A DNA stretch of 64,000 nucleotides, taken from the NCBI RefSeq assembly GCF_030028105.1, contig NC_092389.1:19579180-19643179 (forward strand), in the 5' to 3' direction. Position 1 is the stretch's first letter, and every line of letters starts with the position of its first letter. This document shows positions 4,746 through 62,189 of this stretch, in pieces. The stretch comes from Mobula birostris (lineage: Eukaryota). The translations under genes were made by a program, and so were the position numbers. The notes beneath the pieces were generated by a model. It worked only from the letters and a program-made list of their open reading frames with translations, did no database searches and had not been told where the DNA came from.

Positions 4746-6044
4746 ATGAAAGAAGATTGGTTAAACAACGGTGGTAATAACCACATTGTTAACACTATGC
4801 CAAGTTATATATATTTATGCAATCCAATTGTGTTTGTTGGTACACTTGAAAATGTCATTAATTATATCAGCTATTCTGAAAGTGTGATTTGAATGAAAAA
4901 TGATCTGCTAGTAATTATGTGACTTTGTTACTGGATTTTTATTGAACGAGGCTACAAAATATCAAAGGATTAACGCAGCAGGACCTTCTATTCTGCTTAT
5001 ATGCCCTTTGCAATTTGTCAGTACAGTACCCTGAGTTCATGTTAATAACATGATGATATTTCAATTCAAGAATCCATATAATTCTCTAGCTCTTCTGTTT
5101 AATTTTTACAATAAGAAATGAAGATAGCAGCTCTGAAGTTATAGAATCACCCAGAGCTTTTAACTAAGTTAACTACAGTATTTTTTTCATCAATAATTTT
5201 AATTGGCTGAAAATAAGCTTCGTTTTAGAAACTAAATCTGACTGACTACTACACTCCAACTCTATCTTCTTTTAGAAATTGTTCTTCTTTGTCGGTGTTA
5301 CATGACTTTATGCAATACGTTACAATACTGCGGAGGTAGTTACCATATCAAGTGATTTTTGTATATTTTCTGACTAATGGACAAATCGACTTAAGGACTT
5401 CTATAGAAACGGACCACGTTCATTACCCAGGGATGGCGTGTATTCATACTTTTTATCAATAACGTGAAAAAATATTTGACGTCTCTTTTGTGCATCCTAC
5501 TTGGAGAATGTATGTGGTTCAAGTTTGAGGTTTGTTTTTCTCAGAGCTCAATTTGTTATAAATGAGCTTTTATTTCTGAGGTAAGCACAGCAGAAATACG
5601 CTGACACCAGTTTCAGGAAGTTTTGCGGTAATTCTCAGACACAATGATTAGGATCAACTCCTCAGTTACAATTAGAACTTTGGATCTTGGAAAAGACATA
5701 AATTAGCATTTGAGAGATTTGGTGGATGTGAAATGCATTAATCAAATTGGATACACATTACAAATATGTTAGTCAAAATGTACTTTTCTAATATATTTTC
5801 ATCTCGTTAAAATTTCAGTCAGCATGAAATATGTTGTGTAAAAATACAATGACCACATTAAATAATAATTCATACCTCAGCTCAGTCGATACATTTACCG
5901 GATCTGGAGAAAGAAACATACATATAATTTAGAATCTCTTAATTTCCAGCAAACTCAGATTTCGATACATATCTTAACAGTTATAACTATTAGACCATTC
6001 ATTCCTGACATACCATCAATAGACATTGTTTGCTCCCTCAGCAG

Positions 6045-11440: not shown

Positions 11441-11459
11441 TACAGGAAGCATTACATGA

Positions 11460-29600: not shown

Positions 29601-32600
29601 CAAGAAAAGAATAAATAAAATCTGCAAATCTGCAAATGAAAAGGCTTTTTTGTTAAGGCTAAGCATGAGGAATACGTGCATAATGGCTCAGACAGATAAA
29701 GATAAAGAACCGTTAAGTTATCAGCAGAAATAATACATATACTGTCATATTTTTTACTACATAACCCAAAATCATGCATTCATAATGAGATCAGCAGCAT
29801 AGTTTACCAATTTAAATAGAAAGTGCTTTTGGTCAGTTAATTGACAATAATTACATTAATATATTAAAACGTGAATATGTCCATTTATGAATTGATCACA
29901 ATAATCAATTGTTGATGGGTTTATTATTGTCACGTGTACTGAGATACAGTAAAAAATTGGTCTTTCGTACATTCACTCGGATGAAATTATTGCAACAGTG
30001 CATTAAGGTAGGACAAGGTAAAACAGTAACACAATGCAGAATAGAGTATTACAATTACAGAGAAAGTGCAGCACAGGTAGGCAATAAGGTACAAGATTAT
30101 AAAGAGATAGATTATGAGGTCAAGAATCCATCTTGTTGAAATAAGGATCCATTCAATAGATCAATAGTGGGATAGAAGCTGTCCTTGAGCTTGGTGGTAT
30201 ATGCTTTCAGGATTCCACGTAGGGGAGATGGGGAAAACACATGTTCACACAACTATATTTATTTAAAGTGGTTTCACAAAATCTAATATTAGAAATGATA
30301 GACAACAATAAAATATTATCAGATAAGGGTTAGGAAGTCTGTCTGATGTAGTCTGATGAAAGATCTTGAGCCAATACATCAACTGTATATTTTGCTCTAT
30401 TTTTGCTTCCTGACCTGTTGAGTTCCTCCAGCACTTTGCGTGTGTTGCTCATGATTTCTAGCATCTGCAGAATCTCTTATGTTTAGAAAATGAACTTTCA
30501 ATTGGAAGATTAAGTAATAAATTGGGGTAGGAGGAACTACAAAAGCTTTAAATAGAGCATTAAAATATCAGAGAACAGAAATAAATTAAGTAAGAATTAA
30601 GAAATTATTCCAAAAACCAAGGATTTAAGAGTGAACATCAAATAAAAACATTGGACATTACAAACTAAAATTTAAGAAAACATTAGACCTTGATGTTATG
30701 ATTAGAAATCTTAGTCAGTATAGGCTGGGGATGGAACTGTTTAATATGCTCAGATTGATATGTTGACACATTTGGCAACATTCCTAATATATGATTATTC
30801 AGGTTAATGAACAGAAATATTTTTGAGCAACACACACAAAATGTTGGAGGAACTCAGCAGGTCAGGCAACATCTATGGAAAGGAGTATAGTCAACATTTC
30901 AGGCCAAGAACCTTCATCAGATCTCAATTTTTTTTGAGCTGGAAGGAAGGGAAAATATATTTAATGAAATAGGACAATTTCTCTAAGGGGCGCTTTTGGT
31001 AGGACACATACAATGGAGCTGGGCCAGTTTCGGAGATGACTTCCTTGTGAAACTCATTGGAGTCAAGCAATTTAAAGAGATAAAGATTAAAGATTAGCTT
31101 TATTTGTTACATGAACATTGAAGCATCGAAACATACAGTGAAATGCGTCTTTTGCATCAATGACCAACAGGGTCATAGGATGTGCTGGGGGCAGCCCACT
31201 GGTGTTGCCATCCTTCCAAGACTAATATAGCATGGCCATAGCATAACTTAGTAACCACAAGCCATACATCTTTGGAATGTGGAAGGAAACCAGAGCTGCT
31301 GGAGGAAACCTATGCAGTCACAGGCAGAACATGCAAACTCCTTAAACTCCAATCTTGAAGGTGGAGGTATAAAGCACTACGGTAATCATTACACTGCCAT
31401 CCTACAATCTATAAGCATACACAATCCATATTTCAAAAATGGCACTGCACAGGATCCAATATCAGTTATTTCCTATGTGTCCTCATTCCTGTTTTGGAAA
31501 GAGTATGATTGTTGACAAAAATTCAACAATCTCAACAAATTCAGTTATTTACATAACTGGCTTGGGGACTGTGAAATTATATATGCACTAATAATTTTTA
31601 GTTCCTAAAGCCACTGCTATAAATTCACCATTTCCATTAAAAATGTACTTGAAAATTTGTGATATTGCACACAGTAAATTGTCCTTGTTTTCAAATAGCG
31701 ACAATAAAAATTGCACAATACCAGCAGCCTTCATACAGTCAATCAGATTTGTGACTACTTGAATTGGACCATAACCTGAACCAACCAAAAATAATCTTTG
31801 CAAAGACTGGAACAGATGACATCCTCATTGTAACATCTTATCTTTCCCAGTTTACTTAAAAATTTTTTAATAATATGGTTTGATTGATTATAAACTGATT
31901 TTTGTAACGATGCATTTCTTAGATATTACTGATCTGTAATAATAGGTGACATGTTGCGATAAACAAAGGAATTTTTGGAATGGAATATTACCTCCCAAGC
32001 TATCTTATTTAAAAACATAACTTGCACACTATATGCTATCAATTTCTACGATTGTAGATCTCAATCCAGACATTCCTCTAATCTTCACATTTACAGGCTT
32101 GGTGAACTTTTGTTAACCTCTATTTGTAATCAAAATAAAAATAATAAAAATGTAATAATTTGACAAACTTTCATTGCACAGATGTTGTTTGACCCAGTGA
32201 GTTCCTCCAGCAGATTGATTTTTGTTCCATATTCCAACATCTGCAGTCTCTTGTGGCTCCGAAGTGTAGCAATTGACAGCTTGACAATTAATTGATAGCG
32301 ATGTACTATTTTCTACTGCGGTCACCAAAGCCTATGCTAAAGGCATATCCAGCTGCATACCACACACTGTTCTCACTTACAATTGCTGCAGTTAACCACA
32401 CTTCTTAAAGTCATAGAACTGTGGCTCCAAACCAGAGCGAGCAGAAATGCAAATACAAAGCTACCACCCTTTCCAGTTATTGCAAGGTTTTTTTCTATGA
32501 TTTCTTGTAACAGGAGCAAAATGTGATTTAATATATGAAGGCTGCGATTGTACTATGGAATTCTTATCTCTACTGTTCTTTCACAAGGGCGATTTAATGT

Positions 32601-34396
32601 ATAGAACACCAGATCTTTTCAAATACTGTCCTATTATCCCATCAAAACTCTTTAATCAGAAAAGACTGTATCAAGGGGCTGGATACATTACTATTAAGAT
32701 TAAAAAGCCTACTTCATTTGCTTCAGTAATTAACAATGAAGGGGAAAACATTTCTGGCGTTCAGTGTCCATTATCCTGAATCTGAGTTAGGATGATTACT
32801 CTGATGATAAATTAATCAGTTACTTTGTAGATGTATTTTGTTAATTTAAAAGAGTAATCAAATATGTAAGTTGTTTGATTCATTTTTAATTGTTACATAA
32901 TTTTCTTCAATTTTAATTTGGCCTTGTTACATGTAGGATAATAATACTTAGCTCATCTTCCCTGAGTATGATAATCATTGGAGCAGATATTCTTCTTGTC
33001 TTCTAGTGAAAAATGGGTGGAATGTCTTCATTTCTGACCAAGATAATCCTAGTCAATATTTCGTCCATGTGTGTCTGTCATAGTGGTTGTCATTTACTGT
33101 CGCTGCTGCATGTAAATTTCTACCTTTTCATTAAGTCGTGCCTTAAAACCTGTTGTGCCCACTGACCAGCAGTCTATCAGCCCCCAAGTAAACTATAAGA
33201 CAAGCCATGCAAAATGGAAAGGGCAACCCTTTGGCATAGAATACAACTCGTCACCAAATCCTAATGTAGTGTCAGGGGACTCATCCAGTATGGAATTCAC
33301 GGCAGAAAGATATAAACCAGAGTCAAGAAAGCAACACAATTTTCAGAGAGAACCTTGAAAACCCAAATTTTGGAATATCTTGCCAAAGAATGGAGAATAA
33401 ATCTGTTTCAAATTCAGTCCAGAAAACCAGAGAAAGGCCACTTAGATGCAGGATATCCTCTGATTTTGCTTAAAACATTTATTAAAATTAATTTCTATTC
33501 TCTTTTGGTAGGGATGTGTATGGCAATATTAATATAAAATGGAAACACTACAATTGAGTAAGCTGTATCTATTAGACATGAAACTTTTAAAGATATATAT
33601 TCCCAGCATACGTTTTAAATATCTTCTCATGGGCTGCACAATGTTTCTAATGGATTAACACCACCATAGATGTAATTCAGATAAATTTCCTCTAACCTTG
33701 GTCCTGCTTATACAAGACACAGAGCAGGATATCTTTCTTTAAGAAATCCATGGCAAAGAGTAGTACATCATGGAAACTGGCCTACCAGCCAAACCGCTCC
33801 AACCAAAATGTCCAACTAAAGACTGTGTGCATTCACTTTGTCTATGGCCCAAATTTATGAAATGTATTTAAATGCATTTAAATTTTAGATGCTGAGATAG
33901 CACCATACTTGAGTTGAGAAAATGTTGTATATTAATTTTGAAAAGACCATAGGTGACGATGAGAAACCCAAGAACTAGTGGTCAGATCACATCACGCTTT
34001 GGTTACAAAATCCTGTAAACTGCACTCAATCTGCATTGCAGAGGGAGAAAAAGGTTTCCTCCGTCATGAGGATTTTTGGTGATCTCATTGCACCCTTGGA
34101 GCTTAGAACAGGAAATTCATGGGTGATGGGGGACCTGGGGCCCAAGAGGAGCAAGGGGAGAAAATTCAGCACGCTGATGATGAAACATTAGTCATTATGA
34201 GAACATAAATTTAAATCACTCTCTATGCACAGTGGAAAAATACACCAATGTCATCTAGTTAATTTAAGCTTGAATTTCACATATAGATATAATAGTCTGA
34301 GTGACACTCAGTATGTTCTTCTATATCAAGAATAATAATATTACTATTTAGAAAAGTCTGTGGTGTTCCTCCATCTAATCTGCTCCTACTCTGCTG

Positions 34397-37300
34397 CAGA
34401 AACATAGAAAACCTACAGCACAATACAGGCCCTTCGGCCCACAAAGCTGTGCCAAACATGTCCTTACCTTAGAAATACCTAGGCTTACCCATAGCCCTCT
34501 ATTTTTCTAAGCTCCATGTATCCATCCAGGAGTCTCTTAAAAAACCCTATCGTTTCCATCTCCACCACCGCCAATGGCAGCCCATTCCTCACACTCACCA
34601 CTCCCTGTAAAAAACTTACCCCTGACATCTCCTCTGTACCTACTTCCAAGCACTTTAAAACTATGCCCTCTCGTGCTAGCCATTTCAGCCCTGAAAAAAA
34701 GCCTCTGACTATCCAGATGATCAATGCCTCTCATTATCTTGTACACCCCTATCAGGTCACCTCTCATCCTCCGTCGCTCCAAGGAGAAAAGGTCAACTTC
34801 ACTCAATCTATAAGGCATGCTCCCCAATCCAGGCAACATCCTTGTAGTTCTCCTCTGCACCCTTTCTATGGTTTCCGCAGCCTTCCTGTAGTGAGGCGAA
34901 TAGAATTGAACACAATACTCCAAGTGCGTCTGACCAGGGTCCTATACAGCTGCAACATTACCTCTCAGCTCTTAAACTCAATCCTACAATTGATGAAGGC
35001 CAATGCACTGTATGCCTTCTTAACCACAGAGTCAACCTGCTTGGCAGCTTTTAGTGTTCTATGGACTCAGACCCCAAGATCCCTCTGATCCTCCACACTG
35101 CCAAGAATCTTACCATTAATGCTATATTCTGCCATCATATTTGACCTACCAAAATAAACCACCTCACACTTATCTGGGTTGAACTCCATCTGTCACTTTT
35201 CAGCCCAGTTTTGCATCCTATCAATGTCCCGCGGTAACCTCTGACAGCCCTCCATACTATCCACAACATCCCAACCTTTGTGTCATCAGCAAACTTACTA
35301 ACCCATTCCACCACTTCCTCATCCAGGTCCTTTATAAAAATCACAAACAAAGAGTAGGGGTCCCAGAACAGATCCCTGAGGCACACCACTGGTCACTGGC
35401 CTCCATGCAGAATATGACCCATCTACAACCACTCTTTGCCTTCTGTGGGCAAACCAGTTCTGGATCCACAAAGCAATGTCCCCTTGGATCCCATACCTCC
35501 TTACTTCCTCAATAAGTCTTGCATGTACTTTACCAAATGCCTTGCTAAAATCCATATACACTACGTCAACAGCTCTACCTTCATCAATGTGTTTAGTCAC
35601 ATCCTCACAAAATTCAATTAGGCTTGTAAGGCACGACCTGCCTTTGACAAAGCCATGCTGACTATTCCTAATCGTATTATGCCTCTCCAAATGTTGATAA
35701 GTCCTGCATCTCATGATCTTCTCCATCAACTTACCAACCACTGAAGTAAGACTCACCGGTCTATAATTTCCTGGGCTATCCTTACTCCCTTTCTTGAATA
35801 AAGGAACAACATCCGCAACCCTCCAATCCTCTGGAACCTCTCCCGTCCCCATCGATGATGCAAAAATCATCGCCAGAGGCTCAGCAATCTCCTCCCTCAC
35901 CTCCCACAGTAGCCTGGGGTACATCCCGTCTGGTCGCAGTGACTTATCCAACTTGATGCTTTCCAAAAGCTCCTGCACATCCTCTTTCTTAATATCTACA
36001 TGCTCAAGCTTTTCAGTCTGCTGCAAGTCATCTCTATGATCACCAAGATCCTTTTCCGTAGTGAATATGAAGCAAAGTATTCATTAAGTACCTCTGCTAT
36101 CTCCTCCAGTTCCATACACACTTTTCCACTGTCACACTTGATTGGTCCTATTCTCTCACATCCTATCCTCTTGCTCTTCACATTCTTGTAGAATGCCTTG
36201 GGGCTTTCCTTAATCCTGTCCACCAAGGCCTTCTCATGGCCCCTTCTGGCTCTCCTAATTTCATTCTTATGCTCCTTCCTGCTAGCCTTATAATCTTCTA
36301 GATCTCTATCATTATCTAGTTTTTTGAACCTTTCGTAAGCTCTTCTTCTCTTCTTGACTAGATTTACAACAGCCTTTGTACACCATGATTTCTGTAACCT
36401 ACCATCCTTTCCCTGTCTCATTGGAACATACCTACGCAGAACCCCACGCAAATATCTCCTGAACATTTGCCGCATTTCTTCCGTACGTTTCCTTGAGAAC
36501 ATCTGTTTCCAATTTATGCTTCCAAGTTCCTGCCTGATGGCTTCATATTTCCCCTTACTCCAATTAAGCATTTCCCTAACTTGTCTGTTGCTATCCCTCT
36601 CCAATGCTATGGTAAAGGAGATAGAATTGTGATCATTATCTCCAAAATGCTCTCCCACTGAGAGACCTGACCCTGACCAGGTTCATTTCCTAATACCAGA
36701 TCAAGTACAGCCTTTCCTCTTGTAGGTTTATCTACATATTGTGTCGAGAAACCTTCCTGAACACACCTAACAAACTCCACTCCATCTAAACCCCTCACTC
36801 TAGGGAGATGCCAATCAATATTTGGGAAATTAAAATCTCCCACCACAACAACCCTGTTATTATTACTCCTTTCCAGAATCTGCCTCCCTATCTGCTCTTC
36901 GATATCCCTGTTACTATTGGGTGTTCTATAAAAAACACCCAGTAGAGTTATTGACCCCTTCCTGTTCCTAACTTCCACCCACAGAGACTCAGTAGACAAC
37001 CCCTCCATGACCTCCTCCTTTTCTGCAGCTGTGACACTATCCCTGAGCAACATTGCCATGCCCCCACCTCTCTTCCCTCCTTCCCTGCCCGTTCTGAAAC
37101 ACCTAAAGCCAGGCACTTGAAGTAGCCATTCCTGCCCCTGCACCATCCAAGTCTCTGAAATGGCTACAACATTATAGCTCCAATGCTGATCCACACTCTA
37201 TGCTCATCCACTTTGTTCATAATACTCCTTGCATTAAAATAGACACATCTCAAACCATCGATCTGAACGCGTCCCTCTCTATCACCTGCCTATGCTCCCT

Positions 37301-39201
37301 TTCGCCCTGTCTCCAAGCTTTCTCTATTTGTGAGCCAAGCTCCCTTTTCCTCTGTCACTTCAGTTCTGTTCCCACCCCCCAGCAATCCCAGTTTAAACTC
37401 TCCCCAATAACCTGAGCAAACATCCCCGCCAGGATATTGGTCCCCCTGGGATTCAAGTCCTTTTTCTACAGGTCATTCTGATGGAATGAAGGGATAGGTA
37501 AATAGGGGGAAAAACAGAGGACAATGATTAACTTATAATCAATCACATTGTAAGCACCTTAGCTTACTGCTTTGGACAAGTTTGTGCAGTCAAAAAGAAG
37601 TTTCACTCTGCAACCGGTGACATACTAGTCATTGTTCTCTAAAGATAGACAAAGACTCAAATAAGGAACCATCTGATCTTGCAGAAGCAGCTCAAGATAC
37701 AGCTAAATATGAAGAGTATAGTGTAGGGGCTAGAATGTTCTGGAGAAAAGGGGAAGGGTCCGAATGAGGAACTGATGGGATAGCTTTGGCTTAAAATAAT
37801 TATAACTAACTGACCAATGATTATTTTACATCTAATTGTATCTTTGCATGTGATTGAAATGATTCTAACATTACCTAAACTTGTAATCGTAAGATTTCCT
37901 GCTACCTGATCAATGTTATAAATTGTGGAGAACTGTGCAATTCGGGGGCAGTCTCCGGACTAGCTCCTTTGTGAGATCAGTCTGCAACTTCCCCCATAGC
38001 ATGCTATGAGTAGAGAATAAAGGTTTGAAACAAATTACGTATGTCAGTGTATTTGTGGTACAATTGCTATTGCATCGGGTCCGATCGAGTAAAGACAATT
38101 CCTGCCCCAAAAGAGTTCCCAATGATCCAGAAATCTGAATCCCTGCCCCGTGCTCCAATCCCTCAGCCACGCATTCATCCTCCATCTCATTCTATTCCTA
38201 TACTGACTGTCCTGTGGCACAAGCAGTAATCCCAAGATTACTACCTGTGAGGTCCTGCTTCTCATCTTCCTTCCTAACTCCCTGTGCTTTGTTTTCCTCC
38301 CTTTTCCTACCTATATCGTTGGTACCAATATGTTCCACAACCTCTGGCTGTTCTCCTTCCCACTTCAAGATATCGTGGACGCGATTAGAAACATCCTGGA
38401 CCCTGGCACCTGGGAGGCAAACTACCATCCACGTTTCTTTCCTGCGCCCACAGAATCGCCTCTCTGACTCCTTAACTATAGAGTCCCCTATCACTGCTGC
38501 CATCTTCTTCCTTTTCCTACCCTTCTGAGCCACAGGGCCCGACTCTGTGCCAGAGGCATGACCACTGTTGCTTCCCCCAGGTAGGCCGTCTCCCCTAACA
38601 GTACTCAAACAGGAGTACTTATTGTTAAGAGGAACAGCCACAGGGATACTCTCTAGCACCTGCTTCTTGTCCTTCTCTCTCCTGACTGTTATCTACTTAT
38701 CTGTCTCCCCAGTTCCCGGAGTGACTACCAGCCTATAGCTCCTCTCTATCACCTCTTCACTCTCCCTGACCAGATGAAGGTCATCGAGCTCTATCTCCAG
38801 TTCCCTGAGGCAGTCCCTAAAGAGCTGCAGCTCGACGCACCTGCTGCAGATGTGGCCGTCCGGGAGGCTGGGAGTCTTCAGGACCTCCCACAACTGACAC
38901 CGAGCACAGAAAACTGGCCTCACACACATTCTTTCTGTCTGTATTCTAATCAGATAACCCACCTCGCTTCGACCCTTTATCGCTGAAGCCCCATGGAGCC
39001 ATAGCCTTCCTTCTCTGTCTCCCTCTACTCTATCGGCCGCTCTGTAAAGCTGTCTTCTTTTTAAACTCTTCCCTCTGTTCTCACTGGCCGACCTCCGTGC
39101 ACTTGCGCAGTCGTGCCCCTTCAAACTGCTGAAGAAATAACCGTCACCTTTTCAACTCTGCCCGCTTTAAAACTCTTCCCACTGTTCTCACCGGCTGACC
39201 T
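34397..39201 (-). mobile_element. Duplicate of the near-full-length CR1
   Basis: Same ORFs at offset 16612/16611, with an extra 1-bp deletion in the endonuclease domain. Confidence 0.95.
37479..38097 (+). mobile_element. Duplicate of the solo LTR
   Basis: ATTC TSD at 37475-37478 and 38098-38101. Confidence 0.85.
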
Positions 39202-40194
39202 GTATTTTAAGGCTTCACTTCTTCAAACAGTTAATTATTTCTCAAAGATAACATAAACTATTCTAACATCAACCTGAGAATCATAGTTTTTTTTCCGAAG
39301 TTTGCTTCAAATTATTTTCATTTCAAAAACTTCTTGTGAGAGATTGTAGTAATTTCTCATTAGTCATATTGCCCATAGATCCTGTTAGACAACTTTTGAC
39401 CTCTGCAGCAGAACTAAATAAAACCTATTTTCTTTTAATCCTCTTAATGAGTAACTCCACATCCTGATAGCCTTCTGGAGAATCCATGTTGCAATTTTCC
39501 ATTACTGAATTTCCTCTGCATATAATGCTCTAACTTCAGCAAGTAAAAGAAGTTCACAATCATTCCCTTTTCTTTCACAAAGGTCAACAAGTGTCAGGGG
39601 CTCCTACATCATGTGAATTAATGAAAAACATTTATGTCTCCACAGGCAATACTGAAGAGTTCCATCCTTTGGCCTAATTTACTCATGGATTAAACTACAG
39701 ATTAAAGCCACCCAATCTAAACATTTCCCATAAAATGTCTTCCTTTTATTTTCCAAAGTTTGAAAAATTTCTTAGAATTTTCCACGTTGCTAGTCATATT
39801 ATTTCTTATGCCCTCATAATGTAGATCCTGATTCCAATTTTGCAAATCTTCCAATTCCATATGGTTAGCCATTTTTATATTATTTCATGAATTGCCAAAT
39901 GCTTTATTTAAGTCTGCATTTATTGCCCTTTCCAAGCTGTCCTGGAGAAGGTGATGAGCCACAGAGGTTCCTCTTAGAGAGAATTCACACAGTGTTGTTA
40001 GCTAGCGAGTTCCACCAGTTAGATGTAGTGATTATAAAGGTCTGACTATATACTTCCAGGATGGTGTGTGACTTGGAGGTGAACCAGTAGATGGTAGCAT
40101 TCCAATCTTACTATTTATCAATGAAGAGTAAATAAAATTACCCAATACAAATAGGAGCATTAGTTCTATTGTATTAGTACAATATTGGTAAATG

Positions 40195-40985
40195 CGAAGT
40201 CATCCACTTTAGAAGTAAAAATGGAAGATCAGATTATTATTTAAATAAAAGATTGCAACATGCTGCTGTGCAGAGGGACTTGGGGAGTGCCTGTGCATGA
40301 ATCGCAGAGGGTTGGTTTACAGGTGCAGCAGGCTATCAAGAAGGCAAATGGAAAGTTGGTTTTCATTGCTAGAGGATTGAATTTAAGGGCAGGGAGGTTA
40401 TGCTGCAACTGTACAGGGTACTGGTGAGGCCGCACCTGGAGTACTGTGTGCAGTTCTGGTTTCCTTACTTGAGGAAGGATATACTGGCTCTGGAGGCGGT
40501 GCAGAGGAGGTTCACCAGGTTGATTCCGGAGATGAAGGGGTTAGACTATGAGCAGAGATTGAGTTGCCTGGTATGGTACTCGCTGGAATTCAGAAGAATG
40601 AGAGGAGATCTTATAGAAATGTATGAAATTATGAAAGGGATAGATAAGTTAGAGGCAGGAAAATTGTTTCTACTGGTAGGTGAAACTAGAACTAGGGAAC
40701 ATAGCCTCAAGATTCGGGGGACTAAATTTAGGACGGAGATAAGGAGGAACTGCTTTTCCCAAATCTGTGGAATTCTCTGCCCAATGATGCAGTAGAGGCT
40801 AACGCAGTAAATATATTTAAGACAAGGTTGGATAGATTTTTGCATAGTAGGGGAATTAAGGGGTATGCAGAAAAGGCAGGTAGGTAGAGATGAGTTTATG
40901 GCCAGAGCAGTTATGATCTGATTGAATGGCGGAGCAGGCTCAATGGGGCCAGATAACCATCTCCTGCTCCTATTTCTTATGTTCA
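40195..40985 (+). mobile_element. CR1 3' fragment
   Basis: ORF 40400..40795 (LVRPHLEYCVQFW, RRMRGDLIE) and a TTCTTATGTT-type tail. Confidence 0.9.
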
Positions 40986-41130
40986 CATTAGTCACTGAGC
41001 CATTTCACTCTTAAGAAATTACATTTTAATATTATACCTTATTTATGCTCTGTTGCCAAAGACGTGTGCTATCTGTTTACCATAAAGCTCCAACTTAAAA
41101 ATCTTTTCCCAAAAATATATTTAAACTTAC

Positions 41131-41184
41131 AATCACTGCAGCTTCTCTCTGGTGTAAAAAAATACTGTAACCTGCTCAACTTGC
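41131..41184 (-). CDS. Ig-superfamily receptor, exon 6: first cytoplasmic exon (G)KLSRLQYFFTPERSCSD
   Basis: Acceptor tattttcaaAG, donor GTAAGT, 54 nt, open in phase 1-1, 692 nt below the TM exon. Support is splice signals and phase only. Confidence 0.65.
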
Positions 41185-41876
41185 CTTTGAAAATAGTAAA
41201 TCTTACTAATTCCTGTTGATAATTTCATTCCAAATTTTATGCTAACATCAGAACCAAATTAAATTGAAATCTAGTTTATCTTCTTTTTTGCAGAAAATCA
41301 GTTTTGCAAATTTCATCATCTAGCATGTTTCTTTACCAAAGACTTCTGGAAAATAATGGTCACAGCCTGTTTTATCATTTACAAACCTTCATTTCCCTCT
41401 GACTTGCTGAATCAGCTCTTCAGTATCATTTCCAGTCAAACGCTGAACAATATTACAGAAAACAAAATTTATATCACCTTTCATTCACTTCCTTCAACTT
41501 AATCCAATTAGGACTTTTAAACATTTAGTATCTAACAGAAAATGAGAGCATAATTTCTGTGAAGTCTAAAATAACAGTTTTATCTTTATCAAGGAAAATG
41601 TTACTCATTTTAGCATAAATTTTACGATGACATCAAGAGTACAAGTAATAAAATTTCAAACATTGAACAAGCTCTTCCACAATCCTCTAACTTCAAATGA
41701 TTTGCTTATTTAACAGAGGGAGGTTAGGTCATGCAAATAACCCAAAAATTGAACACACAAAATTGAAAAGCAATGTATAATCATGCAGTCTGTTGAAAAC
41801 CACATCGTTTTCAGCTCACTATTGATGTCAATAGTAAGGTTAACACCTACAACCAATGATTTATTTTAAGATTTAC

Positions 41877-41966
41877 CTTTCCGTTGCCTCTTGCAGATCA
41901 GCCAAAAAAACATTATTGTCATAATGATGACTGTAGTTATGGGGAGCACAGCATAAAGTTGATAAT
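41877..41966 (-). CDS. Ig-superfamily receptor, exon 5: transmembrane exon (Y)YQLYAVLPITTVIIMTIMFFWLICKRQRK(G)
   Basis: Acceptor tatttttcacAG, donor GTAAAT, 90 nt, phase 1-1. A hydrophobic run of about 20 aa followed by a KRQRK stop-transfer cluster. The ORF track shows a different frame here. Confidence 0.9.
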
Positions 41967-42367
41967 CTGTGAAAAATATAATAAATAACAAAATAAAAAT
42001 TCAAGATGTCAACATTTTCACAAAATAAAATGTTTGGAGACATAAAAATAAAATAAAACAAATGCTTTATTCAATTTGAAAGCAGGTTAAATATTTCCAA
42101 CAGTTCTAGAGGGTGTACACATTCATTAATAAACAAAATTGCAGCATTTTAATTTTTAGAAGTTATTTGCCCTACAGTGTAAAAGCATTGTAAGCACTTG
42201 ATGCTTATAGCACTGAATGTGTATTTTAAAATGCAAACAAATATAACAATCATCAACTACTAAGACCAAGAAAGAAGATACAGAATTAATTATTCTGAGC
42301 TTTCATTTCCTGAGATTGAGTCAAACTCAATAAGTACTGTAATGTACACACATGCATGCATACTTAC

Positions 42368-42694
42368 AGTTATTGGTTTCATGATTTGCTTTAATCCAAA
42401 TGCTTGTGTTTCTGCTGCCGTAGTCGTTGTATGCCATGCACCAATAGATTCCCTCATCTTCAGATTGAAAATGTATCTGTACTTTGGCGCAGTTTAATCC
42501 AATATTAGTTTGTAATGTTCCATTTGGACTCTCCCTGACCCTTGTCCACATCACAGTGGAAGCGGGGTTACTCGTCATACAGCAATTCAGCGCCAAGGAT
42601 GAACCGACAACAGCAATGATTTCACTATGGTTGATAGGAAGATAATTATCCATGGTATTCAACTTGTATGTTATTATTGAATCATGTGGTCCAT
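42368..42694 (-). CDS. Ig-superfamily receptor, exon 4: I-set/C2-type Ig domain
   Basis: Within ORF 42327..42785. Acceptor ttttattgttAG, donor GTAAGT, 327 nt, phase 1-1. Motifs (Y)GP, GSSLALNC, SNPASTVMW, EDEGIYWCMAYNDYGS. Confidence 0.93.
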
Positions 42695-44392
42695 CTAACA
42701 ATAAAAGCAATGCATACGTTATTGTAGACCGTAGCAATATAGATACAATTGATGCATGAGTAGACAATAAAAGCAGACTGAGCACTTCTGAAAGGTCATC
42801 AGTTCCAAGGGATCTATGTGTTGAAGATCAAACTACTACCAAAACAAAGTTTTGTAACTAAGGTTTAGACAAAGATAATGTTCTTGCCTATGGATGTACA
42901 GATGTACGGTGAGTGAATTCAGGAGCTTAGCACACCAATCACATGAAAGAAGTTGAGATTCCGCAAGGTTACAGCTGGAAAAATGTAGAGTTCTTGGGGG
43001 GGTTATAGGGCTGTGAGGGGTTTACCATGAGGGTAGGTCATGGAGGAATCTGCCCAGAAGTTAATAGTTCAAAAGTAATAAATCATTGATTTGGAAACAA
43101 TAAAAGTTTTAATTACAGAAGAAGTGTAAGAGTGAAATCTGTTGTGTCATTACATATTGAAAGAGATTTGGATATTCCTTTATTTACAGTAGCATAAAAG
43201 TTAATGCAATCACTTTACAATGCCGGTGATTACTGATTGGGGTTCAATTCCCAACACTGTTTGTAAGGAGTTTGTACGTTTTCATGTTGACCGCAAATGA
43301 TCCATTTCACTGTATATTTTATAGTACATGTGAGAATCTTTCTTTGATCTAATACAAGCTAGCCAGAACAGTTGGCAGAAAATCAAGTCTGCATGCAATA
43401 AAAGACTGGATGATAGATTAGCAGTTGAGTCAAAGTAAAGGTGGAGAGAGGAAATAAAGAGTGGATATAGGGAGTCTCTGTGATGATGTGATTGAAATTA
43501 CATCGAAAGAGTCAAAAGACTGGTCAGTACATTGAATTAGCTGCGTGAGGCAGTGTACATTAATAATATTTTAAAAGTACTTGGGCAGGTACATGGATAA
43601 GAAAGACTTGAAGGGATGTAGGGGAAACATGGGAGTATGGGGCGAGCTTAGATGGGAAACATGGACCAGATTGGCCAAATGGCCTTTTCTGTGCTGTATG
43701 GATTCAATGACTCTTTGTCACTAGGATAAGATGAAGGGCACTGAACTTTAGCAGCAGCCAAAGACAACGTCTTCCCAAGGTTTAACTATTGCAAATCTTC
43801 CAGGGTTGAATCTCGGACAGGCAGTCTCTGAGCAAAGACGTAATGGAGAAATTGTACAAGGTGGTGGTGAAGTAAGTACGCATGTCTGAAGCTTTATATT
43901 TTTTGGATAATGTAAGCAATAGGGGAGGTTAGGTGAAAAACAGGAAGGGGTCATCTAATGATGCATGACCGTGTGGGGGGTGGGGGTGGAGTAAGTTGAT
44001 CTGTGGTTAAAACTTAATGGATCAAAGTGGAACCATGTAGAGACAGCCACACTCACTAGAATGTATTGCAATGTTGGAATTGACCCTTCATAAAAGAGGT
44101 AGTAATGAGTGGGTCAAGAGTCACAGAAAGGATCAACTTTGTGTCCTAGAGATTGGGAAATTTAATGGAGAGCTCTGAAGTATACAACAAGGAAAGGTGC
44201 AAAAGGAAAAAGTGTTGTGAAAAGTGGATGAGTGATCAAAGTAGTGGAATTGGGTCCACAAGCATCAAAAGCACACGTAGGAAATTCAGTTGCACTATCA
44301 CAGACAGCAATATACATCTCAGTTACAACAGGGAATAATGTCGATATAATAAAAGTTTGAAGATTAGCATACACAATGAAGATTATACTTAC

Positions 44393-44695
44393 ACATAACA
44401 TTTAGTTTGATATGGATTTTAATTGGTTGTCTGAAGGTGGCATGATCAATCTGACAGCTGCAAACAGACCCATGGTCTTCCACTCTTGGGACAAGCTTAA
44501 GCTGGCTGGTGACAACAGAAGTGCCGTTATTATTCTTCCACAGAGTTGGTCCAGCAACTTCTGTAAAATTGCTTGTTCCTGAGCATGCCCATGTAAAGGA
44601 GATATCCTCAGCCAACAACCCGTTGCCTGAGCAGTTGAGGACGGATTCATTATCAGCAACCAAAGGACCATCCAGAACAGAAATTTCAGGAGGTT
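44393..44695 (-). CDS. Ig-superfamily receptor, exon 3: C-type (C1/CD80-like C2) Ig domain
   Basis: Within ORF 44364..44768. Acceptor ttctcttttAG, donor GTAAGT, 303 nt, phase 1-1. Motifs EPPEISV, LNC, ISFTW, SQLKL, EDHGSVCSCQIDH. Confidence 0.93.
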
Positions 44696-44864
44696 CTAAA
44701 AGAGAACAAAGCACAATATACTGTATTAAACTATATTGACTGTATCTTACTCTGTCAACAAACTTCACTAATGTATTTTTATGTTAGTGAAGCTTACTCA
44801 CAAATTTGCTTTAGCTTGATACAGAATATGTTAATTTAAAAGAGTTATATCAAATGATTACCAT

Positions 44865-45345
44865 ATAACCATATAACAATTACAGCACGGAAACAGGCCA
44901 TTTCGGCCCTTCTAGTCTGTGCTGAACTCTTACTCTCACCTAGTCGCACCGACCTGCACTCAGCCCATAACCCTCCATTCCTTTCCTGTCCATATAGCTG
45001 TCCAATTTAACTTTAAACGACAACATCGAACCTGCCTCAGCCACTTCTGCTGGAAGCTCCTTCCACACAGCTACCACTCTCTGAGTAAAGAAGTTACCCC
45101 TCATGTTACCCCTAAATTTTTGCCCTTTAACTCTCAACTCATGTCCTCTTGTTTGAATCTCCCCCACTCTCAATGGAAAAAGCCTATCCACGTCAACTCT
45201 GTCTATCCCCCTTATAATTTTAAACACCTCTATCAAGTCCCCCCTCCGCCTTCTACGTTCCAAAGAATAAAGACCCAACTTGTTCAACCTTTCTCTGTAT
45301 CTTAGGTGATGAAACCCAGGTAACATTCTAGCAAATTTTCAAGTA
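44865..45345 (-). mobile_element. CR1 3' fragment in intron 2
   Basis: ORF 44940..45326 (LERRRRRGDLIEV, TRGHELRV) and a (CCATATAA)n tail complement. Confidence 0.9.
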
Positions 45346-46104
45346 AAACAGCCTATTCTTTAGGTGAGAAACATCAAGGAACAAACATATGTTGGAGAAG
45401 TATGATATTACTCCATGTTTATGCTTAAATTGGATTATATACTAAAATATCGCAAGAGCAATTGTTGGATCAAACTCACATGCAGCAGCCCCATGGTCTG
45501 TATTAATTACAAGATAATCTTAATGCACAGTAAGTCAATTCAGTGGGAAATTGATGGGCTTCTGAATTATTCTAGCTGTAAATGTTAATGCAATCAAAAA
45601 ATCATGGCATGGAAGGAGACCGCTGCCGTACATAGGAGCCAAAATAGATTTTAATCTAATTTCCCAGGTTCAAAGCCCTACAGGTACTTATGAAACATGT
45701 TGAGAATTTCACCTCTGATCACCCATTCAGCTGGTGAGCTCCAGACTCTGCCACATAGTCACCTTTTATCAACACTTACTTAATTCTTTTTGGCTCCCAA
45801 GTTACTTACATTTCTGCTGGGATAACTAGATCCTTGCTGTTTTCCTTGTTGCAGAAACTCATAAGTTTATACTCTTTATACTACATCCCCATTAAGCTCC
45901 AAACTGTGTACAATAGATATTTCTTTACCATTGCCTGGTGTCTATTTATAATAATTACTTTCATTTCATTGGATTGTTAATATATTGGAAATGAAACAAC
46001 TGTTGGCTATTTGGAATATTAAATAGAGTGATTGGCATTGGCACTTTTTAATTATTCTTAAAAAGGTAAATGAATGTAAAAGTCACATGAACAATTATAT
46101 AACC

Positions 46105-48060
46105 ATATTATATTTAACAATTACAGCACGGAAACAGGCCATCTCAGCGCTTCTAGTCCGTGCCGAACTCTTACTCTCACCTAGTCCCACCGACCTGCAC
46201 TCAGCCCTTAACCCTCCATTCCTTTCCTGTCCATATAGCTATCCAATTTAACTTTAAATGACAACATTGAACCTGCCTCAACCACTTCTGCTGGAAGCTC
46301 ATTCCACACAGCTACCACTCTCTGAGTAAAGAAGTTCCCCCTCATGTTACCCCTAAACTTTTGCCCTTTAACTCTCAACTCATGTCCTCTTGTTTGAATC
46401 TCCCCCACTCCCAATGGAAAAAAGCCTATCCACGTCAACTCTATCTATCCCCCTCATAATTTTAAATGCCTCTATCAAGTCCCCCCTCAACCTTCTACGC
46501 TCCAAAGAATAAAGACCCAACTTGTTCAACCTTTCTCTTTAACTTAGGAGATGAAACCCAGGTAACATTCTAGTAAATCTTCTCTATACTCTCTCAATTT
46601 TGTTGACATCTGTCCTATAATTAGCTGACCAGAACTGTACACAATACTCCAAATTTGGCCTTACCAATGCCTTGTACAATTTCAACATTACATCCCAACT
46701 CCTATACTCAATGCTCTGATTTATAAAGGCCAGCATACCAAAAGCTTTCTTCACCACCCTATCCACATGAGACTCCACCTTCAGGGAACTATGCACCATT
46801 ATTCCTAGATCCCTCTGTTCCACTGCATTCTTCAATGCCCTACCATTTACCATGTACGTCCTATTTTGATTAGTCCTACCAAAATGTAGCACCTCACATT
46901 TATCAGCATTAAACTCCATCTGCCTTCTTTCAGCCCACTCTTCTAACTGGCCTAAATCTCTCCGCAAGCTTTGAAAACCTACTTCGTTATCCACAACTCC
47001 ACCCACCTTAGTATCATCTGCATACTTACTAATCCAATTTACCACACCATCATCCAGATCATTAATATATATGACAAACAACATTGGACCCAATACAGAT
47101 CCCTGAGGCACACCACTAGACACCGGCCTCCAATCTGACAAACAGTTATCCACCACTACTCTCTGGCGTCTCCCATCCAGCCACTGCTGAATCCATTTTA
47201 CTACTTCAATATTAATACCTAAAGATTGAACCTTCCTAACTAACCTTCCATGTGGAACCTTGTCAAAGGCCTTACTGAAGTCCATATAGACAACATCTAC
47301 TGCTTTACTCTCATCTACTTTCCTAGTAACCTCTTCAAAAAATTCAATAAGTTTTGTCAAGCATGACCTTCCACACACAAATCCATGTTGACTGTTCCTA
47401 ACCAGACCCTGTCTATCCAAATAATTATATATACCATCTCTAAGAGTACTTTCCATCAATGTACCAACCACTGATGTCAAACTCACAGGCCGATAATTGC
47501 TAGGTTTACTCTTAGAACCCTTTTTAAACAATGGAGCAACATGAGCAATACACCAATCCTCCAGCACCATCCATGTTTCTAATGACATTTGAAATATTTC
47601 TGTCAGAGCCCCTGCTATTTCCACACTAACTTCCCTCAAGGTCCTAGGGAATATCCTGTCAGGACCCGGAGACTTATCCACTTTTATATTCCTTAAAAGT
47701 GCCATGGTTCTTTAATCATCATAGTTTCCATAACTACCCTACTTGTTTCCCTTACCTTACACAATTCAATATCTTTCTCCTTAGTGAATACTGAAGAAAA
47801 GAAATTGTTCAAAATCTCCGCCATCTCTTTTGACTCCACACATAGCCGTCCACTCTGATTCTCTAAGGGACCAATTTTATCCCTCACTATCCTTTTGCTA
47901 TTAATATAACTGTAGAAACCCTTTGGATTTATTTTCACCTTACTTGCCAAAGTAACCTCATATCTTCTTTTAGCTTTTCTAATTTCTTTCTTAAGATTCT
48001 TTTCACATTCGTTATATTCCTCGAGCACCTCATTTACTCCAAGCTACCTATATTTATTGT
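46105..48060 (-). mobile_element. 5'-truncated CR1 (RT largely open) in intron 2
   Basis: ORF 46584..47705 has the full set of RT motifs (YADD); 47693..48028 lies upstream in another frame. Confidence 0.95.
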
Positions 48061-48541
48061 AGATAGCAAAAGAAGAAATACAATATCAATTTCAGATATG
48101 ATCTTCACAACTGATTTATGATCCTCTATTAAAATGAAACCACATATAACCTATCAGATCTGGCAAAATTCGCTCAAAACACCAGCACCGATTTACCCCT
48201 ATTTGCTGTGGTTGAAACCTAATGCCCATTTCATAAGCTTTCTCATTGGTTGTGCTTGTTGTCATGTATATTAATGTTTCAGTATATGGCTTGGTACAAA
48301 TGTCACCATGTTTTAACATTATTGTATCAAATAAATGTGCAGTGCAAAAATTGCATATTTGCAGAATGATACAAATGTTTAATCATAAACCTACAGCAGT
48401 GTTTCTTGGCCTGTTATGAATAATGGCTGCTGCCACAGCACAACAAATTTCACTACATATGTCAGTGATAATAAACCTGATTCTGATACTGATACACATT
48501 GCAGAAACTATACTTGTAGAATGACAAAAAAAAAAGTTTAC

Positions 48542-48889
48542 CATAAACCTGTAGCTGTGTTCCTTGGCCTCTTGCCTCTAATGGTGGGTAGACACTGGGT
48601 ATCCTCAGGATACAGGAGTAGCGATTACCAGAGTGACCAAAGGAGACATGTTCAACCTTCAGTGATGCATTACAGTGTTTCAATCCATGCAGACAGGCGT
48701 CAAAGACACAATGCGAATTATTCACTTTGTAAAAAGCATCTGCAGCCCTTGGTGATGTCCTGTACCAGAAAATGATGACCCAGCTATCCTCGGTTGCATT
48801 ATGAGTAAATCTGCAGTTTAACGTGACTGACTCCCCTCTCCCGACACTGACGAGACGCGGCTGGTTCACCTCCAAGAGCACTGGAACCC
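48542..48889 (-). CDS. Ig-superfamily receptor, exon 2: VJ-type Ig V domain
   Basis: Within ORF 48462..48956. TCAG acceptor, GTAAAC donor, 348 nt, phase 1-1. Motifs VNQP, GESVTLNC, IFWYR, ASLKV, YSC and J-like GQGTQLQV. Confidence 0.93.
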
Positions 48890-49328
48890 CTGATGGGAAA
48901 GAAGTAAAGCTTGTCAGATTTGGTCCTAAATTATATGTTAATTTGGGATCCAACATTCTGCCTGAGCTTGGTTTAAATGCACTGAGCGGTTGCAGAGCGG
49001 TGTAGCCACGATTAACTTTGATTCAAGTTCCATGATGGTGCTATACTAACCAAATGTTAACTCAAATACAATTTTAAATTATCGAATCAGCGTCTGGACT
49101 CGCATTCAACGAATACGCAAAACATTTTTCAACCCAAATAAATATAGATTTAATTGAGGCGAAACCTTATGAAGGTGTTCTAGACCTCTGAGTAGAAATT
49201 TTAATCGATTAGCTATCTCAATAATAGACTCGTTCTGTAATGACATTTAAATGCAGAAATGTTCCAAAATTATGATCCTCATCACAGGTTTTTGTTAGTG
49301 CATACATCGTCAGCTCAAAGTAACTTAC

Positions 49329-49377
49329 CCTGGACTAGTGCCTGTAAGAGGAAAAGAAGTTTCAGGAATAATTGCAT
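49329..49377 (-). CDS. Ig-superfamily receptor, exon 1 (signal peptide MQLFLKLLFLLQALVQ-G)
   Basis: ATG at 49377-49375, 16 mostly hydrophobic codons plus 1 nt, then a consensus GTAAGT donor. Phase 1 joins in frame to the V exon. Too short for the ORF track. Confidence 0.85.
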
Positions 49378-49439
49378 CTTTCTCTGATTCCAGCGGTCCC
49401 TATACGGTTTAAACTCTCGGCCCCCTTAACCAGCTCGAA

Positions 49440-49560
49440 GTGTTCGGGCTGCAGTAAAGGATGTGGATGTTTTGCCCGTAAGTAATTTATATGTTCCAGG
49501 CGGAGATCAGCAGAGACTGAGAAATGCCAGAGGATGTGCTGAACGGAGGAAGTTACGTTC
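49440..49560 (-). promoter_or_regulatory. Putative proximal promoter of the Ig receptor gene with ETS and ETS:RUNX-like motifs
   Basis: Repeat-free, relatively CpG-retaining DNA 60-180 nt upstream of the ATG. AGGATGTGG at 49458-49466, a second AGGATGTG near 49531, GAGGAAGT at 49546-49553. Confidence 0.35.
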
Positions 49561-54579: not shown

Positions 54580-56718
54580 GAAACATAGAAAATAGATGCA
54601 GGAGTAGGCCATTCGGCCCTTCGAGCCTGCACTGCCATTTATTATGATCATGGCTGATCATCCAACTCAGAACCCCGCCCCAGCCTTCCCTCCATACCCC
54701 CTGACCCCCGTAGCCACAAGGGCCATATCTAACTCCCTCTTAAATATAGCCAATGAACTGGCCTCAACTGTTTCCTGTGGCAGAGAATTCCACAGATTCA
54801 CCACTCTCTGTGTGAAGAAGTTTTTCCTAATCTCGGTCCTAAAAGGCTTCCCCTCTATCCTCAAACTGTGGCCCCTCGTTCTGGACTTCCCCAACGTCGG
54901 GAACAATCTTCCTGCATCTAGCCGGTCCAATCCCTTTAGGATCTTATACGTTTCAATCAGATCCCCCCTCAATCTTCTAAATTCCAACGAGTACAAGCCC
55001 AGTTCATCCAGTCTTTCTTCATATGAAAGTCCTGCCATCCCAGGAATCAATCTGGTGAACCTTCTTTGTACTCCCTCTATGGCAAGGATGTCTTTCCTCA
55101 GATTAGGGGACCAAAACTGCACACAATACTCCAGGTGTGGTTCACCAAGGCCTTGTACAACTGCAGTAGTACCTCCCTGCTCCTGTACTTGAATCCTCTC
55201 GCTATAAATGCCAGCATACCATTCGCCTTTTTCACCGCCTGCTGTACCTGCATGCCCACTTTCAATGACTGGTGTATAATGACACCCAGGTCTCGTTGCA
55301 CCTCCCCTTTTCCTAATCGGCCATCATTCAGATAATAATCTGTTTTCCTATTTTTGCCGCCAAAATGGATAACTTCACATTTATCCACATTAAATTGCAT
55401 CTGCCATGAATTTGCCCACTCACCCAACCTATCCAAGTCACCCTGCATCCTCTTAGCATCCTCCTCACAGCTAACACTGCCACCCAGCTTCGTGTCATCC
55501 GCAAACTTGGAGATGCTGCATTTAATTCCCTCATCCAAGTCATTAATATATATTGTAAACAACTGGGGTCCCAGCACTGAGCCTTGCTGTACCCCACTAG
55601 TCACCGCCTGCCATTCTGAAAAGGTCCCAGTTATTCCCACTCTTTGCTTCCTGTCTGCTAACCAATTCTCCACCCACACCAATACCTTACCCCCAATACC
55701 GTGTGCTTTAAGTTTGCACACTAATCTCCTGTGTGGGACCTTGTCAAAAGCCTTCTGAAAATCCAAATATACCACATCCACTGGTTCTCCCCTATCCACT
55801 CTACTAGTTACATCCTCAAAAAATTCTATGAGATTCGTCAGACATGATTTTTCCTTTCACAAATCCATGCTGACTTCGTCTGATCATTTCACCGCTTTCC
55901 AAATGTGCTGTTATCACATCCTTGATAACTGACTCCAGCAGTTTCCCCACCACTGACGTTAGGCTAACCGGTCTATAGTTCCCCGGTTTCTCTCTCCCTC
56001 CTTTTTTAAAAAGTGGAGTTACATTAGCCACCCTCCAATCCTCAGGAACTAGTCCAGAATCTAACGAGTTTTGAAAAATTATCACTAATGCATCCACTAT
56101 TTCTTGGGCTACTTCCTTAAGCACTCTAGGATGCAGACCATCTGGCCCTGGGGATTTATCTGCCTTCAATCCCTTCAATTTACCTAACACCACTTCCCTA
56201 CTAACATGTATTTCGCTCAGTTCCTCCATCTCACTGGACCCTTTGTCCCCTATTATTTCTGGAAGATTATTTATGTCCTCCTTAGTGAAGACAGAACCAA
56301 AGTAATTATTCAATTGGTCTGCCATGTCCTTGCTCCCCATAATCAATTCACCTGTTTCTGTCTGCAGGGGACCTACATTTGTCTTTACCAGTCTTTTCCT
56401 TTTTACATATCTATAAAAGCTTTTACAGTCCGTTTTTATGTTCCCTGCCAGTTTTCTCTCATAATCTTTTTTCCCCTTCCTAATTAAGCCCTTTGTCCTC
56501 CTCTGCTGAACTCTGAATTTCTCCCAGTCCTCAGGTGAGCCACTTTCTCTGGCTAATTTGTATGCTTCTTCTTTGGAATTGATACTATCCCTAATTTCTC
56601 TTGTCAGCCACGGGTGCATTACCTTCCTTGATTTATTCTTTTGCCAAACTGGGATGAACAATTGTTGTAGTTCATCCATGCGATCTTTAAATGCTTGCCA
56701 TTGCATATCCACCGTCAA
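54580..56718 (-). mobile_element. 5'-truncated CR1 with well-preserved RT
   Basis: ORFs 55816..56718, 55098..55799 (YLDFQKAFD, KFADD) and 54667..55122; (ACATAGAA)n tail complement. Confidence 0.95.
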
Positions 56719-57281: not shown

Positions 57282-57987
57282 ACATAGACATAGACATAGA
57301 ATAGTACAGCACGGTACAGGCCCTTCGGCCCACAATGTTGTGCCAACCCTCAAACCCTGCCTCCCATATAACCCCCCACCTTAAATTCCTCCATATACCT
57401 GTCTAGTAGTCTCTTAAACTTCACTATTGTATCTGCCTCCACCACTGACTCAGGCAGTGCATTCCATGCACCAACCACTCTCTGAGTAAAAAACCTTCCT
57501 CTAATATCCCCCTTGAACTTCCCACCCCTTACCTCAAAGCCATGTCCTCTTGTATTGAGCAGTGGTGCCCTGGGGAAGAGATGCTGGCTATCCACTCTAT
57601 CTATTCCTCTTATTATCTTGTACACCTCTATCATGTCTCCTCTCATCCTCCTTCTCTCCAAAAAGTAAAGCCCTAGCTCCTTTAATCTCTGATCATAATC
57701 CATACTTTCTAAACCAGGCAGCATCCTGGTAAATCTCCTCTGTATCCTATCCAATGCTTCCACATCCTTCCTATAGTGAGGTGACCAGAACCGGACACAA
57801 TACTCCAAGTGTGGCCTAACCAGAGTTTTATAGAGCTGCATCATTACATCACGACTCTTAAACTCTATCCCTCGACTTATGAAAGCTAACACCCCATAAG
57901 CTTTCTTAACTACCCTATCCACCTGTGAGGCAACTTTCAGGGATCTGTGGATATGTACCCCCAGATCCCTCTGCTCATCCACACTAC
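57282..57987 (-). mobile_element. CR1 3' fragment
   Basis: ORF 57350..58018, (ACATAG)n tail complement, and a CAGAG repeat at both ends. Confidence 0.9.
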
Positions 57988-62185: not shown

Positions 62186-62189
62186 CGAT

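Follow-up and report, generated by a model that had tools for sequence, protein, structure and literature searches.

Which receptor family a gene of the giant manta ray, Mobula birostris, belongs to, and what its product may do, are the questions raised by a 64,000-nt stretch of contig NC_092389.1 (hereafter the window; all positions are window coordinates). A first-pass annotation had described on its minus strand a three-domain receptor of the immunoglobulin (Ig) type, in which a variable (V) domain ending in a joining (J)-type motif is followed by two constant-type domains, and had regarded the gene as hidden and possibly specific to Chondrichthyes. Exons 1–6 of this gene lie in the window; the gene is intact and transcribed and extends over about 68 kb (68,154 bp in assembly GCA_030028105.1). 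It is no hidden gene, as it is already predicted in RefSeq (XP_072094954.1), and it is not restricted to Chondrichthyes, since homologues of the same layout are found in paddlefish, sturgeon, gar, and bowfin. The absence of a fitting named family, in contrast, was borne out: the combination of a VJ-type domain, a C1-set domain, an I-set domain, and a tail with inhibitory motifs of the immunoreceptor tyrosine-based kind (ITIMs) matches none, and the automatic names of the orthologues conflict with one another. The product is a 494-residue type I membrane glycoprotein, which we regard, with a probability of roughly 0.6, as most likely an inhibitory immune receptor much like SIRP-alpha.

Exon structure, transcripts, and database record

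Exons 1–5 (Table 1) have AG/GT borders, join in phase 1 at every junction, and form one open frame, the leader being split by a phase-1 intron. An RNA contig from public run X1 (organism A; 1359 nt, depth 35.8, 0 mismatches) contains the exact joints 49329>48889, 48542>44695, 44393>42694, and 42368>41966; one of these is repeated in run X2 and two in run X3 (organism B, 93–98% identical), and spliced RNA of the gene is present in two Mobula species. The four exact joints show that the gene is real and is spliced through exon 5 as the first-pass annotation had proposed. The upper bound of exon 1 was inferred from the length of the X1 contig, which extends 160 nt 5' of the first joint, with colinearity seen to 49400. 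The transmembrane (TM) segment of exon 5 aligns with those of all orthologues. The ectodomain contains ten N-x-S/T sequons, in keeping with the earlier count of at least nine.

The leader, V, C1, I-set, and TM exons of the proposed six-exon structure were thus retained, and the sixth exon (41184–41131), together with its junction 41877>41184, was rejected. RNA depth is zero there, as it is across 41056–41839 in all four runs examined, and although the X1 contig continues 132 nt past exon 5, that part was not located within 38900–41876. A 28-nt exon (ATCCGGTAAATGTATCGACTGAGCTGAG) was found instead about 36 kb downstream of exon 5, preceded by tctccag and followed by gtatga; its translation agrees with the RefSeq protein and with every elasmobranch orthologue. 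Because exon 6 had been misplaced, the frame of about 390 codons given earlier is incomplete and wrong after residue 372, the full product having 494 residues. Exons 1–5 and the frame of the new exon 6 give the start of the RefSeq protein, residues 1 to about 381. No further tail exons were detected in 1–5876 by a motif scan and a sensitive tblastn search, and the last ~113 residues are encoded beyond the window start.

Table 1. Exons of the manta receptor gene within the window.
Feature	Position	Strand	Details
Exon 1: 5' untranslated region and leader	49329..49488	-	ATG at 49377; coding 49377-49329 = 49 nt, ends in phase 1; donor GTAAGT
Exon 2: single-exon VJ-type V domain, 348 nt	48542..48889	-	Pfam V-set 2e-6; RNA joints on both sides
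Exon 3: C1-set constant-type domain, 303 nt	44393..44695	-	Pfam C1-set 8e-7; RNA joints on both sides
Exon 4: membrane-proximal I-set domain, 327 nt	42368..42694	-	Pfam Ig_3 1.3e-7, I-set 7.7e-7; RNA joints on both sides
Exon 5: stalk end, uncharged TM helix, stop-transfer CKRQRK, 90 nt	41877..41966	-	Translation; RNA joint 41966-42368 in X1 and X2
Exon 6: 28-nt juxtamembrane mini-exon, (D)PVNVSTEL(S)	5876..5903	-	AG/GT; in phase 1, out phase 2; tblastn with orthologue tails

The corresponding RefSeq model (P0053), which was identified by a profile search, is annotated as 'sialic acid-binding Ig-like lectin 14 [Mobula birostris]' and has 494 amino acids. It is identical to the spliced frame across residues 1–372 and diverges only from the rejected exon 6 onward. 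Neither another Ig exon nor a paralogue was found in the 64-kb window, and no other genes are called within 10 kb of the manta gene; the 10-kb flank in skate is likewise empty. The only neighbour gene seen, in gar, encodes a protein with RIIa and IQ domains.

Domain types and relatives of the receptor

In Pfam searches, each of the three large exons yields one domain type, namely V-set, C1-set (with CD80-like C2 at 8.5e-6), and I-set/Ig_3, in accordance with the three-Ig-domain receptor with a J-bearing V domain that had been described. The V exon ends in the J motif G-Q-G-T-x-L-x-V and carries the canonical Cys-Trp-Cys set together with an extra, family-wide Cys pair (C60/C72), placed in the C''–D region. 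C25, W41, C60, C72, C92, G107, and T110 are the invariant residues of this domain; C25, W41, and the Y-x-C motif containing C92 are present in all 16 family members (16/16). A fifth V cysteine, Cys82 of the RefSeq product (…FDAC…), is present in both Mobula species beyond the four family-conserved ones; this free cysteine could form a disulfide-linked dimer. No recombination signal sequence (RSS) heptamer or nonamer was found near the V exon (48300–49000). Both the V exon and the family V profile match Ig lambda V, T-cell receptor (TCR) alpha V, VNAR, and SIRP-beta domains, and outside the family, among 1.84 billion representatives, the V domains that come nearest are Ig-lambda-like and SIRP ones. 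When the V exon was searched exhaustively, it recovered six close representatives (44–51% identity), all from sharks and rays.

The C1 exon matches B7-H6, Ig Fc domains, SIRP-alpha d3, and the beta-2 domain of major histocompatibility complex class II, and the family C1 profile matches UrIg2, Ig CH domains, and SIRP-gamma/alpha d3. Domain 2 was assigned to the Pfam C1-set in all 12 elasmobranch members (12/12) and scores 59–67 bits in sturgeon and bowfin; in ray-finned fish members, these C1-set scores compare with 24–42 bits for CD80-like C2. A word-indexed search with the C1 region alone returned the protein itself as the sole match. A second invariant Cys pair (W-x-C in strand C and C-x-C in strand F) is present in domain 2 of all elasmobranch members and absent from the ray-finned fish members, and it probably forms an extra buried disulfide. 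Domain 3 matches contactin, DCC, MAG, CADM4, and Siglec-8 structures in the Protein Data Bank (PDB).

When the V–C1 family profile was used as a unit, contiguous alignments were obtained with the IgA1 heavy chain (3e-35), shark UrIg2 (1.5e-32), and SIRP-alpha (1.3e-24). The whole span of sturgeon V–C1 could be aligned with UrIg2 (9e-21) and also with complete Ig light chains (7e-14). AlphaFold models gave a predicted local distance difference test (pLDDT) score of 77 for the ectodomain and 85 for V–C1, with strands A-B-C-C'-D-E-F-G in domain 2, and the overall ectodomain layout, as modelled, is that of nectins and CADMs. Foldseek searches with the ectodomain and V–C1 models returned MAG, nectin, CADM, CD22, SIRP, tapasin, and Ig light chains with similar scores and did not separate these families; the family assignment was made without them.

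Orthologues were identified in rays and skates (Mobula hypostoma, Hemitrygon, Hypanus, Narcine, Leucoraja, and Rhinoraja) and in sharks (Hemiscyllium, Chiloscyllium, Rhincodon, Stegostoma, Heterodontus, Heptranchias, Carcharodon, Cetorhinus, two Scyliorhinus species, and Pristiophorus). The paddlefish protein was aligned over all three domains (29% identity, 313 residues, E = 1e-43), and both the V-C1-I-TM layout and the family-specific extra V Cys pair are seen in the sturgeon, gar, and bowfin proteins, whose tails are short and devoid of ITIMs. The maximum-likelihood tree agrees with the species tree: chondrosteans and holosteans are placed apart from elasmobranchs, in which batoids, orectolobiforms, and lamniforms plus carcharhiniforms each form a monophyletic group. 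This agreement suggests that the gene has been passed on vertically, mostly as a single copy, since the ancestor shared by cartilaginous and bony fishes. The manta gene is thus one orthologue among those of sharks, skates, and rays, in which the gene is mostly single-copy, and the short-tailed homologues belong to ray-finned fishes other than teleosts. The automatic names given to the orthologues disagree (Siglec-8/12/13/14, MAG-like, sialoadhesin-like, SIRP-alpha-like, hemicentin-2-like, CADM1, and uncharacterized); those of the Siglec type probably derive from the ITIM tail and the I-set domain. A SIRP, nectin, CADM, or MAG gene, or any other named gene, that is a full-length one-to-one orthologue would have removed the novelty, but none was found, and a literature search yielded no description of this receptor family.

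A genuine C1-set domain joined to a J-bearing V domain is a hallmark of antigen receptors and a few relatives such as SIRP, UrIg, and tapasin. Among these, the shark UrIg/UrIg2 genes (non-rearranging; PDB 9dmx) are alike in having a single-exon VJ without RSS followed by a C1-set domain and in occurring in elasmobranchs, and with the C1 and V–C1 profiles UrIg2 ranks first or second among the solved matches. The manta gene has the one-exon VJ, the lack of RSS, and the split leader of a UrIg-type gene, but its constant domains are not all of the C1 type, domain 3 being I-set. UrIg and UrIg2 contain only C1-type constant domains, three to eleven in number, and ITIMs are not mentioned in the text of the paper describing them (PMC12227049). 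The manta gene instead has one C1, one I-set, and, as predicted from its sequence, an inhibitory-type tail, and its family also occurs in ray-finned fishes. B7-H6 (NCR3LG1) and tapasin likewise contain a unit of V plus C1-set. The C domain of B7-H6 is the best single-sequence PDB match of the manta C1 exon (1.7e-7) and is absent from the top 60 with the family profile, and among Swiss-Prot structural matches of the V–C1 model that of chicken tapasin ranks first (6e-14); neither, however, has a third I-set domain or a tail with an ITIM or an immunoreceptor tyrosine-based switch motif (ITSM).

Genes of the VJ-C1 type have been used in recent work to reconstruct the origin of rearranging receptors (PMC12227049 and PMC10751288). 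An unnamed, expressed VJ-C1 family in elasmobranchs and basal ray-finned fishes provides a new comparison point for this problem. We tentatively suggest, as a possibility that we hold well below even odds, that the non-rearranging VJ-C1 stock from which Ig and TCR came survives not only in UrIg/UrIg2 and SIRP but also in this family, as a third lineage; it may have persisted as one gene from the time when cartilaginous and bony fishes last shared an ancestor and have turned inhibitory in elasmobranchs, with its V domain under diversifying, perhaps pathogen-driven, selection.

Tail motifs, selection, and competing explanations

The cytoplasmic tail of the RefSeq product is about 122 residues long and contains TVYAVV (398, ITSM), VSYADI (430, ITIM), and SEYSAV (479, ITIM), all encoded outside the window; nearly every elasmobranch orthologue retains the three tyrosine motifs. 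Charged residues are absent from the TM helix (LYAVLPITTVIIMTIMFFWLI). The protein therefore has the sequence features of an ITIM-bearing receptor, i.e. motifs of the form (S/I/V/L)xYxx(I/V/L) or TxYxx(V/I) combined with an uncharged TM segment. SIRP-alpha, the known receptor to which we liken it, has a non-rearranging V domain with a J-like G-x-G-T, then a C1-set domain, an uncharged TM segment, and several ITIM-type tyrosines. In the mechanism that we propose, the fast-evolving, non-rearranging V domain of the receptor, presumably carried by an immune cell, would bind a ligand, probably a protein; Src-family kinases would phosphorylate the tail tyrosines of the ITSM and ITIMs; the phosphorylated tyrosines would recruit phosphatases of the SHP-1/SHP-2 type; and these would dampen activation of the receptor-bearing cell. 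The signalling steps are taken from established knowledge of ITIM/ITSM receptors, and the present analysis contributes the anatomy to which they may apply. The receptor is thus a candidate SIRP-like checkpoint receptor in sharks and rays.

Between the two Mobula species, replacement changes predominate in the V exon, and the C1 exon is conserved. Differences were counted from the mismatches of the X3 contig and from the two Mobula proteins, X3 being taken as M. hypostoma. The V exon shows 16 differences in 243 nt, at least 14 of them nonsynonymous, with a rough ratio of nonsynonymous to synonymous rates (dN/dS) of about 2. The corresponding values are 4 differences in 248 nt (1 nonsynonymous; rough dN/dS about 0.1) for the C1 exon and 7 differences in 229 nt (5 nonsynonymous; about 0.7) for the I exon. 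The contrast in replacements between V and C1 gave p = 0.03 in Fisher's test, and the pattern is in keeping with a V domain that binds a ligand and evolves rapidly upon a scaffold that is conserved; purifying selection acts on the C1 exon.

Several points weigh against an inhibitory receptor with a fast-evolving V domain. The replacement excess in the V exon, taken alone, is not significantly above the neutral expectation (binomial p = 0.27), and the contrast between V and C1 assumes that X3 is M. hypostoma or a near relative, which two diagnostic changes fit: X3 carries S174N and R285K, both seen in the M. hypostoma protein. The ITIM/ITSM exons lie outside the window and rest on the RefSeq model and the orthologues, not on reads, and ITIM-like motifs are also found in the adhesion molecules PECAM-1, CEACAM1, and PVR. 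Finally, the ray-finned fish homologues have short tails without ITIMs, and inhibition is therefore not a property of the whole family.

The strongest of the other explanations, which we nevertheless consider unlikely, is that the gene encodes an adhesion molecule of the nectin/CADM type, whose V domain binds in trans to itself or to a partner and whose ITIMs merely modulate adhesion, as in PVR or PECAM-1. Nectins, CADM1-4, and PVR have the same succession of V, C1-like, and I/C2 domains and TM segment as the manta ectodomain, and CADM1-4 and nectins are its best structural matches in Swiss-Prot (E about 1e-15 to 1e-13). The D1-D2 domains of nectin-3 and nectin-4 gave the top TM-scores for the V–C1 model (0.55–0.59), and CADM4 d3 matches domain 3 (1.7e-7). 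In sequence, however, no nectin or CADM was found in the top 60 of any V, C1, or V–C1 sequence or profile search, and domain 2 of the manta receptor is a true C1-set domain, which in the ray-finned members fits this model far better than CD80-like C2. Nectins and CADMs are not known to have a J-type V domain with affinity to antigen receptors, and their cytoplasmic ends are different. The C-terminus (…QDLITA or …QDLRTV) is unlike the afadin-binding or PDZ/4.1-binding ends of these molecules, and such rapid change of the V domain between closely related species is not usual among adhesion molecules of the homophilic kind.

Somewhat less probable still is that the gene is a co-orthologue, in cartilaginous and basal ray-finned fishes, of tetrapod SIRP genes, with domain 3 exchanged and with a CD47-like 'self' marker as ligand. 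The J-bearing V domain, the C1-set domain 2, and the multi-ITIM tail are those of SIRP-alpha, whose contiguous alignment covers residues 4–204 of the V–C1 profile. The C1 profile also matches SIRP-gamma (1.4e-9) and SIRP-alpha d3 (2.6e-8), SIRPs are among the top structural matches, and the sturgeon and paddlefish members have been automatically named 'SIRP-alpha-like'. SIRPs, however, have two C1-set domains, whereas the manta family has a membrane-proximal I-set domain and the extra conserved V Cys pair, and Ig chains and UrIg2 score equal to or better than SIRP. The neighbour gene in gar is not known from the human SIRP region, a further point against co-orthology.

That the product is a true Siglec, as its RefSeq name implies, i.e. 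a sialic acid-binding lectin with an inhibitory tail, is very improbable. In its favour are the automatic names of the Siglec, MAG, and sialoadhesin type, the Ig1-3 domains of MAG as the top solved-structure match of the whole ectodomain (4.8e-15, 20–22% identity), and the matches of Siglec-8 and MAG to domain 3. CD33-related Siglecs and MAG are also alike in having an I-set or C2-like membrane-proximal domain and a tail with an ITIM and a distal ITIM-like motif, and we take the ITIM and membrane-distal xEYSxV arrangement of the manta tail to resemble that of CD33-type Siglecs. The MAG match is, however, no better than those of nectin, CD22, or SIRP, and Siglecs are absent from the top 60 of the V, C1, and V–C1 sequence searches. 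Siglec V domains have a B–E disulfide and an interdomain-bridge Cys without the B–F pair, whereas in the manta family the B–F cysteines and the core Trp (C25, C92, and W41) are invariant in the 16 members. At the place where we assume the F-strand Arg of Siglecs to lie, a position taken from general knowledge and not from an alignment to a Siglec, the family has I, A, E, V, T, or K after the F-strand Cys and no conserved Arg on the strand. Siglecs have only C2-set domains after the V-set, and domain 2 here is a true C1-set domain. The Siglec identity was rejected on these grounds, and the 'Siglec' names carried by about twenty RefSeq models are probably wrong and would lead studies that survey how Siglecs evolved astray.

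A decaying or non-functional gene copy, for which the lost signalling tail of the ray-finned relatives and the 36-kb intron with retroelement debris and a 16.6-kb duplication between exons 5 and 6 might speak, is largely refuted by the open frame, the canonical splice sites, the spliced RNA in two Mobula species, the purifying selection on C1, and the orthologues kept in about 20 species, and is scarcely credible.

Intron 5 and additional gene copies

Intron 5 of the manta gene is about 36 kb long, and most of it is filled by a direct tandem duplication (6250–22871 and 22862–39482; 16.6 kb, 99.96% identity), which is either a very recent event or an assembly artefact. The gene is 51.3 kb long in M. 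hypostoma and 68.2 kb in M. birostris, the difference corresponding to about one 16.6-kb repeat unit. Many retroelement-like open reading frame (ORF) fragments of the reverse transcriptase/endonuclease type were recognized by eye in the window (1131–2528, 18707–20642 with a copy at 35319–37194, 46584–48028, 55098–56718, 57350–58018, and 61308–62636), one of them within intron 2 of the receptor gene. Several other organisms have contigs that match these ORFs at very high depth.

Additional copies or domains were seen in several elasmobranchs. The 'sialoadhesin-like' protein of Pristiophorus japonicus (P0004), a second copy, is divergent and branches at the base of the elasmobranch clade; it lacks an ITIM tail and carries an arginine at the start of its membrane segment, and it could be the activating counterpart of a paired receptor. 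At the Leucoraja erinacea locus (L002), a second leader exon (29497–29547 of L002, 94% identical) and a second C1 exon (33525–33815 of L002, 96% identical) lie within the annotated gene, which suggests a tandem duplicate, perhaps merged by the gene model. Two 96%-identical products were found in Rhinoraja, and the Hemiscyllium orthologue (P0051) contains two tandem V domains.

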